Source of the DNA: Macrostomum hystrix
Lineage: Eukaryota; Animalia; Platyhelminthes
DNA length: 64,000 nucleotides
Direction: 5' to 3'
Assembly (NCBI GenBank): GCA_950097015.1
Contig: CATNEN010000001.1
Span: forward strand, 23,374,001 to 23,438,000
In this document: positions 51,233-64,000 of the stretch, one piece after another
How the letters are laid out: each line of letters begins with the position of its first letter
Numbering within the stretch: the stretch's first letter is position 1
Position numbers and translations under genes: made by a program
The notes under the pieces: generated by a model
Databases searched by the model: none
What the model was told of the DNA's origin: nothing
What the model saw: the letters and a program-made list of their open reading frames with translations, nothing else

Positions 51233-51313
51233 GTGAAATTAACAGCACTAATATTACTTAATATATCATTGCGTCAATTTTTCTATCTTTCAGCCTCTTT
51301 TTTCCGTCAGAAG

Positions 51314-51514
51314 ATGTCGTCAGTCGACGAGATTGGCGAGAGTCGAGGAGTCAATAGCAAACGTGCTTCTCCGCCTATGGATGACGTCAGCCTAGTCACT
51401 AGTCAGCAGCAGCAGAAGCAGCAGCAGAAACAGCAGTTTCAACAGCATCGCTCGATTAGTTCGCCTGAAGCGGCTCAGTTTCAATCGAATCCTCTGACAA
51501 CTGGCCTGCTTCAG
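51314..51514 (+). CDS. WNK: WNK-family kinase, putative exon 1
   Basis: ATG after an acceptor-like tract; MSSVDEIGES...GLLQ; donor GTGATT, phase 0. Confidence 0.6.
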
Positions 51515-52302: not shown

Positions 52303-52595
52303 GTGGACACAGCGGGTACTCCAATCATCGGCAATTCGCCCGAAGTGACTCCAAATTCAGGCGGAAGTAGCGGCGGCGGAGTCGGCTCCGGCATTTCGTC
52401 CTTCGCATCGCAGCGGCCTCACAAAAGCTCGTTGAGAACTGGCGGCATCCGGGCTCGCAAGAAGGTCACCATCTGGGAGACCGTGTTGTCTTCGTCGGCC
52501 GCCTCCGCTTTGTCGCCTCACTCTGTCAGCGAGTCTGGCGCGGACACTGCCGACTCTGCGGCGACTGCTGCTGCTGGCGGTGGGCACTTACTCGA
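52303..52595 (+). CDS. WNK: WNK-family kinase exon 2 (low complexity)
   Basis: CCTAG acceptor, GTGAGT donor at 52596; phase 2 matches the next exon. Confidence 0.7.
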
Positions 52596-52694
52596 GTGAG
52601 TCATTCTTGTTATTTCCTTGAGATTTTTCAGCAAATTTCGGTTCAAAAGCTTCGCTGGCTGTCCTAATTTTTACATTTGTTTTGTGTATTTGGT

Positions 52695-56420: not shown

Positions 56421-56759
56421 CACAAAACGCATGGAAAATTCATCGTTCTGAACTGTTTAATATTGTGAATTTGTTAATATTGAGACACGCACTTGTTTAT
56501 GCGTCGAGGGCGCACTATTTCTACAGAATATTTCTGACACCACCGCAGTAAAAGAGTGTACACTGTGTGATTGCGGTGTGCACTTTTTCCAGTCTATCGC
56601 TCTAGTGGTTATTCTAGTAAATGAGAAAGTATAGACTGTGCAGAAGCTGGCACAGGCCAAGTTTAAAACCAAATTAATATTCTTTGAGGGTCATGGGTTC
56701 GAGTCCCCAGCTAGACTAATTAGCTAATTAAGCTTCCACTTGAACCTTCTGAACTGCAG

Positions 56760-57393
56760 ACGTCGGCGAGTTGTTAGCGAGCCACTTTCTACGCAACCGG
56801 AAGGGACAGAGGAAATTGTTGAGAAGCAGAATGAAGACTGGCCTTCAGCGTCTGCACTTTCTTCAGACCAGCTGATTGTCTCCGCACAGTCTGGAGAATT
56901 GCCTTCTCAGCCAGCATCAGGCATGATGTCAGCTGCTGCTGCTGCTGCTTCCACGGCTTCAACCGCATCTGCTTCTATTGGTCAGCAGCCACTTCCTAAT
57001 GCTCAACAGCCACAGCAGCAGCAGCAGCAGCCATCACAGCAGCAGAAGCAGCCAAACTCTTCAGCGCCAACAACAGCTGCGGCGGCTGCGGGGGCAGCCT
57101 CAAGCGGCAGCAAGGCCAAGCAATCCAAAGAAGAGAAGGCCAAAGAGCGGGAACGCAAGCGCGAAGAGCAGCTGTGGCGCCGGCATCAGATCGAGCTGCA
57201 GCTGAAGCAGCGTGGCATCGCCGTCAGCCCGTGCGGCCGCTGGATTAAACACAATCTAAAATGCGGCGAGGGCGCCTACAAGCGCGTGTTTCGCGGCTAT
57301 GACCGGGAGCAGGGCCGGCCTATCGCCTGGTGTGAGCTAAAGTTTCAGGTTGGCAAGGATAAGCCAGCCGAGAGGGAGCAGGTTCGCAAGGAG
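56760..57393 (+). CDS. WNK: WNK-family kinase exon 3 (kinase subdomains I-III)
   Basis: AVSPCGRWIK...GEGAYKRVFRGYD...IAWCEL: Lys in the glycine loop and Cys in beta3, the WNK hallmark. Confidence 0.92.
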
Positions 57394-57414: not shown

Positions 57415-57925
57415 AAATGAGATGACATTTGACATGGCAGATATGAGATATGGGGAGATATGAGACGCGGAAGAGATAGAAGAACACACGGGCGAAAAAG
57501 GAGATAAGACACGGACAGATGAGGAGATAAGACACGGACAGATGAGGAGATAAGACACGGACAGATGAGGAGATAAGATACGGACAGATGAGGAGATAAG
57601 ACACGGACAGATGAGGAGATAAGACACGGACAGATGAGGAGATAAGACACGGACAGATGAGGAGATAAGACACGGACGGATGAGGAGATAAGACACGGAC
57701 AGATGAGGAGATAAGGCACGGACAGATGAGGAGATAAGACACGGACAGATGAGGAGATAAGACACGGACGGATGAGGAGATAAGACACGGACAGATGAGG
57801 AGATAAGACACGGACAGATGAGGAGATAAGACACGGACAGATGAGGAGATAAGACACGGACAGATGAGGAGATAAGACACGTACAGGTATTAGACAGGTG
57901 AGAGAAGAGACACAAGCGAGATGGG
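57415..57925. repeat. 23-bp minisatellite related to the MITE-borne 16-mer
   Basis: GATGAGGAGATAAGACACGGACA tandem copies. Confidence 0.92.
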
Positions 57926-57974: not shown

Positions 57975-58240
57975 GTCGAGATGATGATCAAATGTGAGCA
58001 CCCGAACATTGTTCGCTACTACGATCTGTTCGAATTTTATTTCGAGCTAGAAGAGAACGGAGAACGCGGAGAGAAGGTTAAAGCTACCGTTATCATCACC
58101 GAGTTCATGAGCGAGGGCACGCTCAAGGAGAAGATGAAGACATTCTACAATGAGCAGACCAGAGAGGCTGTGGTAGACTTCAATGTCTTTCAGTCCTGGA
58201 TGCAGCAGATTCTGGAGGGCCTGCGGCATATGCATCACAA
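57975..58240 (+). CDS. WNK: WNK-family kinase exon 4
   Basis: EHPNIVRYYD, IITEFMSEGTLK, SWMQQILEGLRHMH; CGCAG acceptor, GTGAGT donor. Confidence 0.93.
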
Positions 58241-58274
58241 GTGAGTCCGGGGACAGGTGGGGTCTCATATCACC

Positions 58275-61105
58275 CCACAGTCTCTACTCACCACAGTCTC
58301 TACTCACCAGTCTCTACTCACCACAGTCTCTACTCACCACAGTCTCTACTCACCAGTCTCTACTCACCACAGTCTCTACTCACCACAGTCTCTACTCACC
58401 AGTCTCTACTCACCACAGTCTCTACTCACCACAGTCTCTACTCACCAGTCTCTACTCACCACAGTCTCTACTCACCACAGTCTCTACTCACCAGTCTCTA
58501 CTCACCACAGTCTCTACTCACCACAGTCTCTACTCACCAGTCTCTACTCACCACAGTCTCTACTCACCACAGTCTCTACTCACCACAGTCTCTACTCACC
58601 ACAGTCTCTACTCACCACAGTACAGTCTCTACTCACCACAGTCTCTACTCACCACAGTCTCTACTCACCACAGTCTCTACTCACCACAGTCTCTACTCAC
58701 CCAGTCTCTACTCACCACAGTCTCTACTCACCACAGTCTCTACTCACCACAGTCTCTACTCACCACAGTCTCTACTCACCACAGTCTCTACTCACCACAG
58801 TCTCTACTCACCACAGTCTCTACTCACCACAGTCTCTACTCACCACAGTCTCTACTCACCACAGTCTCTACTCACCACAGTCTCTACTCACCACAGTCTC
58901 TACTCACCACAGTCTCTACTCACCACAGTCTCTACTCACCACAGTCTCTACTCACCACAGTCTCTACTCACCACAGTCTCTACTCACCACAGTCTCTACT
59001 CACCACAGTCTCTACTCACCACAGTCTCTACTCACCACAGTCTCTACTCACCACAGTCTCTACTCACCACAGTCTCTACTCACCACAGTCTCTACTCACC
59101 ACAGTCTCTACTCACCACAGTCTCTACTCACCACAGTCTCTACTCACCACAGTCTCTACTCACCAGTCTCTACTCACCACAGTCTCTACTCACCACAGTC
59201 TCTACTCACCAGTCTCTACTCACCACAGTCTCTACTCACCACAGTCTCTACTCACCACAGTCTCTACTCACCAGTCTCTACTCACCACAGTCTCTACTCA
59301 CCACAGTCTCTACTCACCAGTCTCTACTCACCACAGTCTCTACTCACCACAGTCTCTACTCACCACAGTCTCTACTCACCACAGTCTCTACTCACCACAG
59401 TCTCTACTCACCACAGTCTCTACTCACCACAGTCTCTACTCACCACAGTCTCTACTCACCACAGTCTCTACTCACCACAGTCTCTACTCACCACAGTCTC
59501 TACTCACCACAGTCTCTACTCACCACAGTCTCTACTCACCACAGTCTCTACTCACCACAGTCTCTACTCACCACAGTCTCTACTCACCACAGTCTCTACT
59601 CACCACAGTCTCTACTCACCACAGTCTCTACTCACCACAGTCTCTACTCACCACAGTCTCTACTCACCACAGTCTCTACTCACCACAGTCTCTACTCACC
59701 ACAGTCTCTACTCACCACAGTCTCTACTCACCCAGTCTCTACTCACCACAGTCTCTACTCACCACAGTCTCTACTCACCACAGTCTCTACTCACCACAGT
59801 CTCTACTCACCACAGTCTCTACTCACCACAGTCTCTACTCACCACAGTCTCTACTCACCACAGTCTCTACTCACCACAGTCTCTACTCACCACAGTCTCT
59901 ACTCACCACAGTCTCTACTCACCACAGTCTCTACTCACCACAGTCTCTACTCACCACAGTCTCTACTCACCACAGTCTCTACTCACCACAGTCTCTACTC
60001 ACCACAGTCTCTACTCACCACAGTCTCTACTCACCACAGTCTCTACTCACCACAGTCTCTACTCACCACAGTCTCTACTCACCACAGTCTCTACTCACCA
60101 CAGTCTCTACTCACCACAGTCTCTACTCACCACAGTCTCTACTCACCACAGTCTACTCACCACAGTCTCTACTCACCACAGTCTCTACTCACCACAGTCT
60201 CTACTCACCACAGTCTCTACTCACCACAGTCTCTACTCACCAGTCTCTACTCACCACAGTCTCTACTCACCAGTCTCTACTCACCACAGTCTCTACTCAC
60301 CACAGTCTCTACTCACCACAGTCTCTACTCACCACAGTCTCTACTCACCACAGTCTCTACTCACCACAGTCTCTACTCACCACAGTCTCTACTCACCACA
60401 GTCTCATACTCACCACAGTCTCTACTCACCACAGTCTCTACTCACCACAGTCTCTACTCACCACAGTCTCTACTCACCAGTCTCTACTCACCACAGTCTC
60501 TACTCACCACAGTCTCTACTCACCACAGTCTCTACTCACCAGTCTCTACTCACCACAGTCTCTACTCACCACAGTCTCTACTCACCACAGTCTCTACTCA
60601 CCAGTCTCTACTCACCACAGTCTCTACTCACCACAGTCTCTACTCACCACAGTCTCTACTCACCACAGTCTCTACTCACCACAGTCTCTACTCACCACAG
60701 TCTCTACTCACCACAGTCTCTACTCACCACAGGCTCTACTCACCACAGTCTCTACTCACCACAGTCTCTACTCACCACATTCTCTACTCACCACAGTCTC
60801 TACTCACCAGTCTCTACTCACCACAGTCTCTACTCACCACAGTCTCTACTCACCACAGGCTCTACTCACCACAGTCTCTACTCACCACAGTCTCTACTCA
60901 CCACAGTCTCTACTCACCACAGTCTCTACTCACCACAGTCTCTACTCACCACATTCTCTACTCACCACAGTCTCTACTCACCACAGTCTCTACTCACCAC
61001 AGTCTCTACTCTCACCCTGCAGTCTCTACTCCCACCCTTCAGTCTCTACTCTCACCCCGCAGTCTCTACTCTCACTGTGCAGTCTCTATTCTCGCCTACA
61101 GTCTC
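58275..61105. repeat. 16-bp minisatellite, about 2.8 kb (WNK intron 4)
   Basis: TCTCTACTCACCACAG tandem copies. Confidence 0.98.
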
Positions 61106-61164
61106 ATCCACTCTCATCCAATAGCCCACTTACTCTCAGTTCATTCCCGCCCTTCGCCGCACAG

Positions 61165-61494
61165 AATGAAGCCGCCCGTGATTCACCGCGACCTCAAGCC
61201 GGAGAACGTGTTTATTGCCGATGGCGAGAACCCTGAGGAGTACTACAACATCAAGATTGGCGACTTCGGCCTGGCCACGGCCAAGACCCAGACCCGCAAG
61301 ACCATGCTGGGCACCCTGGGCTACATGGCGCCCGAGATGCTGCAGGAGAGATACGACGAGAAGGTGGACATATTCGCATTCGGCATTCTCATTGTTGAGA
61401 TGGTCACTAACAGCATTCCGTATCAGGAGTGCCAGAACTTCTTAGACGTCTGGCAGCGCATTGCCAGCAACACTCCGCCGAAGGTGCTCACTCG
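61165..61494 (+). CDS. WNK: WNK-family kinase exon 5 (catalytic loop and activation segment)
   Basis: PPVIHRDLKPENVFI, IKIGDFGLAT, GTLGYMAPEM, YDEKVDIFAFG, PYQECQN. Confidence 0.95.
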
Positions 61495-61769
61495 GTGAGT
61501 GACAACCGCATCAGCGTTTGACAGCTCGTTATCGCTTTTTAGGAAAAATGATTCTTCAATAGTCATTCATAATCGGCTTTCCATCCAGTTCTTCCACGGA
61601 AATTTCCATCCCGTCGTTCAAATGACCTTGACCTTTCAACCCAGACATTCGAATGACCTTTTATCCGGTCACTTAAGCTACTTTTTTTCTTATCATCAAA
61701 TTACATTCTAATCACAGTCATTCAAATGACCAACCCGGATTTTATTTTTTTTTCCAACAATTTCCGCAG

Positions 61770-61977
61770 CATTGAGAGTCAAGACGTTCGCGACATGTTC
61801 TTCACCTGCACGCATCCGCTGCCGGATTTTCGACCCACCGTCGAGGAGCTGCTGTCGTTGCAGATCTTCAATCTGAAGCCGATTCCCATCCAGTTGCAGC
61901 TGGTGCGCCTGTCCCAGACGCTCAAATGGCAGGACGCCGGAGATACGGCGGCTGATGGCAGTTCCACTCTGTCTGGG
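61770..61977 (+). CDS. WNK: WNK-family kinase exon 6
   Basis: IESQDVRDMFFTC...RPTVEELLSLQIF (subdomain XI); phases consistent. Confidence 0.88.
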
Positions 61978-62077: not shown

Positions 62078-62742
62078 CCCCCAGTCTCCATCCCCTGATC
62101 CCATCAGTCTCCATCCCCTGATCCCATCAGTCTCCATTCCCTGATCCCCTCAGCCTCTACCGTCTGATCTCCCCAGTCTTTATCCTCTGATCCCCTCAGT
62201 CTGTATCCTCTGATCCCCTCAGTCTGTATCCTCTGATCCCCTCAGTCTCCATCCCCTGATCCCATCAGTCTCCATCCCCTGATCCCATCAGTCTCCATTC
62301 CCTGATCCCATCAGTCTCTATTCCGTGATCCCATCAGTCTCCATTCCCTGATCTCCTTAGTCTCTACCGTCTGATCCCCTCAGTCTTTATCCTCTGATCC
62401 CCTCAGTCTTTATCCTCTGATCCCCTCAGTCTTTATCCTCTGATCCCCTCAGTCTTTATCCTCTGATCCCCTCCTGATCCCCTCAGTCTGTATCCTCTGA
62501 TCCCTCAGTCTGTATCCTCTGATCTCCTCAGTCTGTATCCTCTGATCTCCTCAGTCTGTATCCTCTGATCCCCTCAGTCTGTATCCTCTGATCCCCTTAG
62601 TCTTTATCCTCTGATCCCCTCAGTCTGTATCCTCTGATCCCCTCAGTCTGTATCCTCTGATCCCCTCAGTCTGTATCCTTTGATCCCCTTAGTCTTTATC
62701 CTCTGATCCCCTCAGTCTCCAACCCCTGATCCCAACCAGTCT
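62078..62742. repeat. 23-bp minisatellite
   Basis: TCCTCTGATCCCCTCAGTCTGTA variants. Confidence 0.93.
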
Positions 62743-62771: not shown

Positions 62772-63107
62772 GAGCCGCCCAAGAAGGTGGCGGCCAACTT
62801 GCGCGACCAGGAGCCGGTGGAGTACTCGGGCGATCCCAACAAATTCTACCACGTGGCGGACTTTCGCCTGGTGGTGAACGATCGCACCCTGCAGCAGCAG
62901 ATGCGCATTCTCCCGGGCGTCGGCTTCGAGTTCCAGTTGGACTGCTTCATCGACGAAGATTTGGAGACTGTCGTCAATTCGTTCGCCGACTTTGCAGAGT
63001 CTGACAACGGTAACAACGCTAGCGGGGTTAGCAGCGACCAGCAGAAGCGGCTGCGGCAGAAGCTGGTGTCCAGCATCCGACATCAGCTCAACTATTATCG
63101 GAAAAAG
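62772..63107 (+). CDS. WNK: WNK-family kinase exon 7 (PF2/CCT-like domain)
   Basis: FRLVVND...GFEFQLDCFIDEDLETVVNSF resembles the WNK autoinhibitory PF2-like domain; CCCAG acceptor, GTGAGA donor. Confidence 0.8.
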
Positions 63108-63209: not shown

Positions 63210-63690
63210 TATCCCAATCCTAAAATCCCCATCCTATCCCAATCCTCAGTTCCCTACAATCGAAACGACATCCCTTCTTCCTTCCCAACTTTGATTCTAT
63301 TCCCAAATCCCCATTCGAAGCGAAATCCCTTCTTCCTTCCCAACTTTGATCCCAATCCCGAATCCCCATTCGAAACAAAATCCCTTCTTCCTTCCCAACT
63401 TTGATCCCAAACCCGAATCCCCATTCGAAACAAAATCCCTTCTTCCTTCCCAACTTTGATCCCATTCCCAAATCCCCATTCAAAACGAAATCCCTTCTTC
63501 CTTCCCAGTTTTGACCCCATTCTCAAATCCCTTCTTCCTTCCCAACTTTGATCCCATCCCTAAATCCCCATTCAAAACGAAATCCCATCTTCCTTCCCAA
63601 CTTTGATCCCATTCCTAAATCCCCGATGGAAACGAAATCTCATCTTCCTTCTCAGTTTTGATCCCATTCACTAATCCCCATTGCCCATTC
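63210..63690. repeat. About 59-bp minisatellite
   Basis: CCCTTCTTCCTTCCCAACTTTGATCCC...AATCCCCATTCGAAAC recurring. Confidence 0.88.
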
Positions 63691-63774
63691 AAATATGAAT
63701 TTTTATTTCCCACTTTTAATTTATTCCACTCTAAAATCCCTAACAAAAACTCCCACGGAAATGATTCCATCCAG

Positions 63775-64000
63775 GTGCTGGCAGGTGTTTGGAGTCATTT
63801 CATGGAGAAGATTCGCGAGTCGGAGCCGGAGCAGGACTCAGAGACCGACGCCTCGCCCATCGTTCGCCTCGGCCTTCAGGCTCGACGCTGGGCCGAAGCT
63901 AAACGACGGACTTTAAAGGAGCGAGACGACTACAATGCCCGCTGGGAGGAGGAGTATGAGGCGCAGCAGCAGCAGCAGCAGGATGACTCGCAGCCATCGT
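63775..64000 (+). CDS. WNK: WNK-family kinase exon 8, 3'-partial
   Basis: TCCAG acceptor, phase 0; open frame VLAGVWSHFMEKIRE...QQQQQQDDSQPS to the window end. Confidence 0.72.
   Translation, partial: MLAGVWSHFMEKIRESEPEQDSETDASPIVRLGLQARRWAEAKRRTLKERDDYNARWEEEYEAQQQQQQDDSQPS

Follow-up and report, generated by a model that had tools for sequence, protein, structure and literature searches.

Of the intracellular sensors of chloride, WNK ('with no lysine') kinases are the best documented. The DLG motif, part of a chloride-binding 3/10 helix, is characteristic of metazoan WNKs without being part of the definition of the family, and docking to the CCT domain of SPAK/OSR1 is achieved by RFxV/I motifs. 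According to structural and mutational work on the mammalian enzymes, chloride binds to the amides of G370 and L371 of WNK1, and the surrounding pocket is formed by F283, L299, L369 and L371 (PMC7606576). In that work, the L369F change raised the autophosphorylation and activation of WNK1, the WNK1 L369F/L371F and WNK4 L322F/L324F proteins were chloride-insensitive, and the fully insensitive constructs of these two kinases were double L-to-F mutants (PMC7606576). The single-change variants WNK1/L369F and WNK3/L295F have also been described as chloride-insensitive (PMC7606576, PMC13397483). A second set comprises E388, K381 and K375, which form pairs with D349, K351 and D353; jointly with K310 and Y420 these residues enclose a conserved water network in the inactive dimer (PMC11588334). 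The E388A/E314A mutants were reported to have higher activity and a lower sensitivity to chloride, and D279N and Y346F to be less active (PMC11588334), while weaker inhibition by potassium was described for E388A/E314A and for WNK3 L295F (PMC13397483).

For flatworms, our literature search returned no paper that describes the WNK motifs, and a term search found no mention of them in a 2024 preprint on WNK/NRBP evolution or in a 2026 WNK review; supplements may hold alignments. In the Schistosoma haematobium kinome paper, a WNK1-like protein is listed as an 'unclassified' kinase, its name being derived from Swiss-Prot similarity only (PMC4669435). Here we show, by sequence comparison, that positions 61165-61494 of the window (the whole stretch of 64,000 nucleotides that was analysed) constitute one exon of an intact multi-exon WNK kinase gene of a Macrostomum flatworm, and that the site at which chloride, potassium and water are bound as inhibitors in mammalian WNKs is remodelled in the whole flatworm WNK clade.

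Gene structure

Exons were located by combining the listing of open reading frames with a reading of the splice sites. Each search was run with single exons, and the M. lignano records P0151 and P0162 served as full-length stand-ins for the spliced protein. The exon at 61165-61494, like all exons described here on the plus strand, is delimited by a CAG acceptor, the last base of which is 61164, and by a GTGAGT donor starting at 61495. Its coding frame starts at 61166, base 61165 being the final base of a split codon, and the translation from 61166 reads MKPPVIHRDLKPENVF...KIGDFGLAT...GTLGYMAPE..., with HRDLKPENVF also encoded. Pfam assigned this exon to the protein kinase domain (E 1.4e-25); it covers the catalytic loop, the activation segment and helices F-G, and is 99% identical to residues 238-346 of P0162. 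Within it lie HRDLKPEN (61184-61207), the D-F-G motif (61262-61270) with its Phe codon TTC (61265-61267), the GTLGYMAPE motif (61310-61336) and a Thr codon (61301-61303) which, by alignment to WNK1, occupies the position of S382.

The N-lobe is encoded upstream. In the exon at 56760..57393 the kinase domain starts at approximately 57190 and is 100% identical to residues 81-148 of P0162; a donor follows position 57393, and the 5′ boundary was assigned only by inference, from an acceptor AG at 56758-56759. This exon carries the codon for the glycine-loop Lys equivalent to WNK1 K233 (57280-57282, in GEGAYK) and the codon for the Cys that replaces the beta3 Lys, equivalent to C250 (57331-57333, in IAWCEL). 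The rest of the N-lobe, from helix C to helix E, is encoded at 57975..58240 (97% identity to P0162 residues 149-236), where the equivalents of F283 (here Tyr) and L299 (here Ile) are found together with T301 and K310. This exon closes with two bases of a split Lys codon, and P0162 has K at the junction, as predicted. Downstream of the exon with the DFG motif, the end of the kinase domain (HPLPDFRPTVEELL) and the linker PIPIQLQLVRL are encoded at 61770..61977 (87% identity to P0162 residues 348-416), and here P0162 has R where the split codon was predicted. These are followed by a post-kinase domain at 62772..63107 and by a charged helical region at 63775..64000, which runs past the edge of the window in a frame that stays open to extended coordinate 64149 and is closed either by a stop codon there or by an earlier splice donor. 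Within a further 10 kb of the contig lie a Gln/Pro-rich exon and, approximately 2.8 kb beyond the end of the window, a downstream exon of the WNK gene with the RFxV motif GRFAVTP.

A tblastn search with P0151 retrieved six exons in order at 75-91% identity, and P0162 covers the exons contiguously at 84-100% identity per exon, with K and R at the predicted split codons. The predicted exon-by-exon gene model is thus validated by P0162. The closest database proteins to the window WNK are likewise M. lignano records, one of which is 99-100% identical in exons 1 and 3, in keeping with a contig of Macrostomum, and not of human, origin.

The introns of the gene consist almost entirely of minisatellites with units of about 16-55 bases (58241-61164, 57440-57900, 62080-62740 and 63220-63700). 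The largest, an intron of about 2.9 kb at 58241..61164 (+), is nearly all made of CTCTACTCACCACAGT-like units. Stop-free reading frames of up to 1085 codons arise from these minisatellites in several frames and are not genes; because of the repeat, all three forward frames of 58241..61164 contain such spurious long frames. Two further open reading frames on the plus strand, at 52303-52599 and 51233-51500 (...GGIRARKKVTIWETVL... and the ATG-led MSSVDEIGES...), resemble the N-terminal region of M. lignano P0151 (GGGPRVLRKRVTIRETLL). They are probably upstream exons of the WNK gene, which would then span more than 15 kb.

Residues at the ion-binding site of mammalian WNKs

When the exon at 61165-61494 was aligned to WNK1, DFG fell on DLG, HRDLKPEN on HRDLKCDN, and GTLGY on GTPEF. 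The three C-lobe motifs noticed earlier (HRDLKPENVF, KIGDFGLAT and GTLGYMAPE) were thus present and correctly placed, and the Leu-to-Phe change is a natural one that sits exactly at the leucine of the chloride site. The window WNK therefore has DFG at 61262-61270 in place of the DLG of metazoan WNKs. The premise of the earlier note, namely that L369 belongs to the chloride site and that its engineered replacement by Phe lowers inhibition by chloride, agrees with the published account (PMC7606576).

To compare the regulatory sites, we tabulated 24 positions from an alignment numbered from the HRD aspartate (D349), which reproduces all residue numbers quoted in the papers. Six non-flatworm metazoan WNKs (from nematodes, a mollusc, a rotifer and Branchiostoma, plus a vertebrate-type WNK1) were identical at all 24. 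The window WNK keeps K233, C250, T301, K310, D349, K351, D368, G370, L371, K375 and K381, and is changed (in WNK1 numbering) by F283Y, L299I, C352P, D353E, L369F (DLG to DFG), S378T, S382T, I384L, P387L, E388G and Y420I. The flatworm set as a group is also altered at F283, L299, C352, E388 and Y420, and residue 388 was Gly in 15 of 15 tabulated flatworm records as well as in the window gene. Six fluke-group sequences (five flukes and P0024) showed gaps at 233, 250 and 283, which reflect local misalignment, as these same sequences do carry GEGGYK and VAWCE. Compared with mammalian WNK1 and WNK3 (PDB 6CN9, 5O26 and others), the window WNK shares the glycine-loop Lys and the Cys in place of the beta3 Lys, as well as K233, D349, K351, D368, G370, L371, K375 and K381; it differs in DFG, HRDLKPEN, GTLGY (E388 to Gly), F283Y, L299I, Y420I and S382T, and carries two inserts, one of 5 residues ahead of the DFG strand and a longer one following helix C. 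The parts needed for catalysis are kept, that is, the glycine-loop Lys, the Asp and Lys of the HRD motif, the DFG Asp and a phosphorylatable Thr at the S382 position. The latter is a conservative change and a predicted phospho-acceptor of the activation loop.

The mammalian constructs engineered at these positions, namely WNK1 L369F, L369F/L371F and E388A, WNK4 L322F/L324F, and WNK3 L295F and E314A/Q, match positions that are naturally changed here (L369F, E388G). However, in the engineered proteins only one or two residues of a canonical kinase are altered, whereas the window WNK keeps L371 and differs at at least eight other regulatory-site positions.

Distribution among WNK kinases

Homologues were sampled with a phmmer search of exon 3 against 1.84 billion representatives and with a word-indexed search using the P0151 kinase domain. 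Every flatworm record that contained the full stretch from the catalytic loop to APE had DFG (21 of 21, from 11 named species plus two further records), and in the same 21 records HRDLK was followed by P, A or S instead of Cys, and GT[LV]G[YF]MAPE was present. The species, flukes and tapeworms among them, were M. lignano, Schistosoma japonicum, Heterobilharzia americana, Dicrocoelium dendriticum, Paragonimus heterotremus, P. westermani, Mesocestoides corti, Echinococcus granulosus, E. multilocularis, Rodentolepis nana and Hymenolepis weldensis. Kept outside this count were P0167, which is without the stretch, and two Echinococcus fragments without the kinase domain; planarian, polyclad and catenulid records were absent from the sample, which, in view of the length and word limits of the searches, says nothing either way about these groups. 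The M. lignano proteins (P0162, P0161 and P0151), the S. japonicum 'WNK4' (KAH8853002.1) and the Echinococcus 'WNK1' (CDS20373.1) have the clade and the DFG set of changes in common with the window gene. In contrast to the window gene, KADN, KSDN or KSEN is found in the flukes and tapeworms, residue 283 is Cys, and T301Q and K375V occur in addition, as read from database gene models. The WNK-like M. lignano record P0167 (635 aa) has unrelated residues in place of the HRD-to-DFG stretch, as if frame-shifted, and represents either an error in the gene model or a fourth copy that is broken.

All 34 non-flatworm WNKs of the metazoan type (23 vertebrate-like and 11 others, including four nematodes, Branchiostoma, Mytilus and Brachionus) had DLG, KC[DE]N and GTPEFMAPE, with KCDN in 33 and KCEN in P0093. 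DFG in a WNK is nevertheless not confined to flatworms, since it occurred naturally in 12 non-metazoan WNK-type sequences, for example in the plant Penstemon; DMG was found in two others and DWG in two. In all of these non-metazoan sequences KC[DE]N is unchanged and the loop reads GTPx[FY]MAPE, mostly with Glu at 388. The 12 with DFG (among them Penstemon smallii P0237 and the protist records P0089, P0142 and P0223) resemble the flatworms in the Leu-to-Phe change at 369 but, unlike them, retain KC[DE]N, which is KCDN in 11 and KCEN in P0089. GTPEFMAPE is present in nine, residue 388 is Gln or His in P0142, P0159 and P0089, and in the four tabulated sequences Tyr420 is kept in three and replaced by Thr in P0089. 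Position 250 is Asn in these kinases, not Cys, and the trees indicate an origin separate from that of the flatworm change. Among the WNKs examined by alignment, it is thus the flatworm combination that is unique, and not DFG by itself.

Paralogues in the genome

The 220-Mb assembly of the same animal was searched with exon 3, exon 1 and exon 5, and the best-scoring candidates were considered. Each query returned the same three WNK genes, one on contig C1 (the gene of the window) and two on contig C25, and all three encode HRDLKPEN, DFG and GTLGYMAPE. Pairwise dS values of 0.4-1.0 and dN/dS ratios of 0.03-0.12 were obtained, and the Phe codons are TTC, TTC and TTT. By these measures the three copies are old and under strong purifying selection, and are neither errors nor pseudogenes. 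The Phe codon itself is real and not a read error, since the two further copies also have DFG (TTC, TTT) and P0162 matches the exon at 99%. No WNK of the DLG type was found in the 220-Mb assembly with the N-lobe, C-lobe and post-kinase exon queries, a result that is strong but not absolute, and the next-best matches to the WNK exons were only 34-47% identical.

Many kinase exons of about 40% identity on contig C1 were considered as WNK candidates and rejected, as the best PDB matches of one of them (L005) were MKK7 and MAP4K. At least 14 copies of such an exon, flanking the window, are scattered across about 4 Mb in total of this contig (C1, 22.1-26.3 Mb). This exon reads QPPVIHRDINCSNII...VKLIDFGLS...GTLNFMAPE, with Asn replacing the catalytic-loop Lys (e.g. 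L005, C1:25543600-25543935), and its nearest solved structures are MKK7 and MAP4K, not WNK. The copies look like a lineage-specific expansion, possibly of pseudokinases.

WNK identity

To assign the gene to a kinase family, the exons were compared with all PDB chains. The 15 best matches of exon 61165-61494 were WNK1 or WNK3 (E 2.3e-27 to 1.5e-25, 92-98 bits), and the best non-WNK match was a CDPK at 60 bits (E 2.4e-15). The N-lobe exon matched WNK3 (1.1e-9) and WNK1 (1.4e-7), with CK2 next at 0.045, and the only kinases matched by exon 57975..58240 were WNK1 and WNK3 (E 5e-8). GEGAYK aligned to GRGAFK of WNK3, placing the catalytic Lys in the glycine-rich loop as in WNKs, and IAWCEL aligned to VAWCEL of WNK3, with Cys in place of the beta3 Lys. 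The two N-lobe hallmarks that the earlier note had named are thus indeed present, in an upstream exon.

A tree was built from the whole kinase domain, with 281 columns, 27 WNK-type sequences and 10 other kinases. In this tree, in which the window gene was represented by its proxy P0151 and P0025, P0017, P0035, P0087 and P0055 were left out as outgroups, the WNK-type sequences separated from the other kinases at 100/100. The seven flatworm sequences formed one clade (100/100), with M. lignano as sister to flukes and tapeworms, and grouped at 84/66 with the remaining metazoan WNKs that have Cys250. A long stem led to the flatworms, at 0.84 versus 0.52 for the vertebrate-type stem. Together with the best PDB matches of exons 1-3, this tree supported the earlier assignment to the WNK family. 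A second tree, built from the C-lobe only (109 columns, 43 sequences), placed all 24 non-flatworm WNKs in a clade (97/99) that excluded the flatworm sequences. The latter did not form one group and stood between the outgroup and the other WNKs, with a root at 59/34; a long-branched non-WNK outgroup sequence fell inside the Macrostomum group. We attribute this placement to a return of the flatworm C-lobe, at several of the sites that mark WNKs, toward the consensus of kinases in general, and the C-lobe tree was set aside as misleading in view of its long outgroup branches, the stray non-WNK sequence and the weak root.

Post-kinase domain and pathway partners

The earlier note had placed a PF2-like domain after the kinase. 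The exon at 62772-63107, with the core FRLVVNDRTLQQQMRILPGVGFEFQLDCFIDEDLETVVNSF, is conserved from Macrostomum to flukes and tapeworms (FRLVVNDR...GFEFQLDCFIDEDLETVV here versus LRLRFRDK...SLEFDLDIYKAEDQDIPDLI in tapeworms). Pfam OSR1_C (PF12202) was absent from this exon and from all five flatworm WNK records scanned, a PDB sequence search with the exon gave no match, and neither did Foldseek with a poor AlphaFold model built from a 12-row alignment (pLDDT 55.8). With hhalign, which compared it with the stretch behind the kinase domain of canonical WNKs, a narrow, vertebrate-heavy WNK profile reached 31.6% probability, and a diverse profile (nematode, mollusc, rotifer and lancelet WNKs with PF12202 added) reached 81% (E 1.2e-5, 77 columns). 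A language-model look-up (Atlas) returned OSR1_C clusters first, with a score of 0.78 that lies below the reliable range. The profile comparison thus points to a probable PF2-like domain (CCT-like 1), as proposed, and the Pfam, PDB and Foldseek searches found none. In the fluke and tapeworm WNKs P0043, P0152 and P0027, a second conserved block at around residues 1000-1100, RYIIRITRLERESEG...LWKLSFRCNLSDT.DDIKLF, looks like a second CCT-like domain. Fluke and tapeworm WNK records also contain several RFxV-like motifs (GNRFTVVS, SKFVVTP).

Predicted RFxV docking motifs are present in the window WNK gene (GRFAVTP) and in M. lignano P0151 (GRFTVLP). In the genome, two loci scored over the Pfam cut-off for OSR1_C (PF12202), one of which matched the CCT domain of SPAK (7.6e-13), and SLC12 C-terminal domain matches were found in three places. 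Judged from these domain matches, the partner genes of the WNK-SPAK/OSR1-SLC12 pathway are present.

Discussion

Taken as a whole, the findings are best explained by an intact and active WNK whose ion site has been remodelled throughout the flatworm WNKs, a reading that we consider likely. The encoded protein is most likely an active kinase that would autophosphorylate its activation loop and use SPAK/OSR1 as a substrate. Its inactive state, which in WNK1 is filled with water and holds chloride, is probably less stable; compared with WNK1, chloride and potassium would then inhibit the kinase directly to a lesser degree or with another tuning, and its regulation would pass to other signals, for instance the post-kinase domain or crowding. 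This sequence of events, from the destabilised state to regulation by other signals, is advanced tentatively, by analogy with the mammalian enzymes, and we rate it slightly below an even chance. Reduced ion inhibition is a reasonable if tentative expectation since mutations of L369 and E388 reduce the inhibition by both chloride and potassium in mammalian WNKs; against it stands that G370 and L371, whose amides bind chloride, are both kept.

The same conservation of the ion-holding residues speaks for the main alternative, in which the pocket has been compensated and chloride inhibition is about as in canonical WNKs. Phe369 would then have co-evolved with Tyr/Cys283 and Ile299 in a way that preserves the volume of the pocket, and DFG would be a neutral re-packing. 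With F283Y/C and L299I arising at the same time, space for Phe369 could be gained and a pocket rebuilt, and positions 283 and 299 are changed along with 369 in every flatworm sequence that aligned there. Moreover, full insensitivity of WNK1 and WNK4 was obtained with double L-to-F mutants (PMC7606576), and L371 stays Leu here. What such a compensation leaves unaccounted for is E388, a position at which mutation independently lowers chloride and potassium inhibition and which is Gly in all 15 tabulated flatworm records and in the window gene. In addition, at least five regulatory-site positions changed on one stem branch, as opposed to the six other metazoan WNKs, which are invariant at all 24; this looks like release or re-tuning, not neutral drift. 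We therefore regard compensation as the rather unlikely reading, and altered ion sensing as the one tentatively preferred.

The earlier note had instead suggested a chloride-insensitive or rewired paralogue, possibly relevant to osmoregulation where salinity is high or variable. Such a gene would be an extra copy that evolved for this habitat, next to a canonical WNK with DLG. Macrostomum lignano is an intertidal animal and there are indeed three paralogues in the genome. However, the search for a canonical copy only returned the same three DFG genes, and no DLG-type exon was found with the N-lobe, C-lobe and post-kinase queries, so that the idea of a special paralogue beside a canonical one did not hold. 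The habitat reading fails as well, because the same DFG set is carried by flukes of blood, liver and lung and by tapeworms. We consider this proposal very improbable. A sequencing error or pseudogene was ruled out by the three copies, the synonymous variation of the Phe codon and the low dN/dS ratios. Finally, that the gene is no true WNK orthologue, and encodes an ordinary Ser/Thr kinase or is a copy in decay or of chimeric origin, is likewise very improbable: HRDLKPEN, DFG and GTxxYMAPE do fit the ordinary kinase consensus, the C-lobe tree puts flatworm sequences between the outgroup and the other WNKs with a non-WNK sequence among them, and the S. haematobium protein was left 'unclassified' in the kinome paper (PMC4669435), but even by itself the C-lobe exon reaches 98 bits with WNK1 and 60 bits with the next family, both WNK hallmarks stand in the N-lobe, the whole-domain clade that includes the flatworms is supported at 100/100, dN/dS is 0.03-0.12, and the RFxV motif and the probable PF2-like domain are present.

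The changes are of interest beyond this gene. Relief from chloride and potassium inhibition is clearest for mutations at L369 and E388, and flatworms represent a natural experiment in which these two positions and those around them differ, with catalytic residues and downstream pathway preserved. The flatworm WNK would bear on whether an animal WNK can function without chloride sensing, or on how a rebuilt pocket could still sense ions. As flukes and tapeworms share the changes, the remodelled site would also mark a structural difference between the WNKs of parasite and host. It is conceivable, if doubtful, that an animal phylum that includes the parasites Schistosoma and Echinococcus gave up or retuned the direct sensing of chloride and potassium by WNK, the pocket and its water cage having been dismantled on the flatworm stem. 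If this is true, the control of cell volume and ions in flatworms would depend on a WNK that responds to other signals, and in a kinase that is conserved elsewhere the altered pocket would be a feature specific to the parasites.
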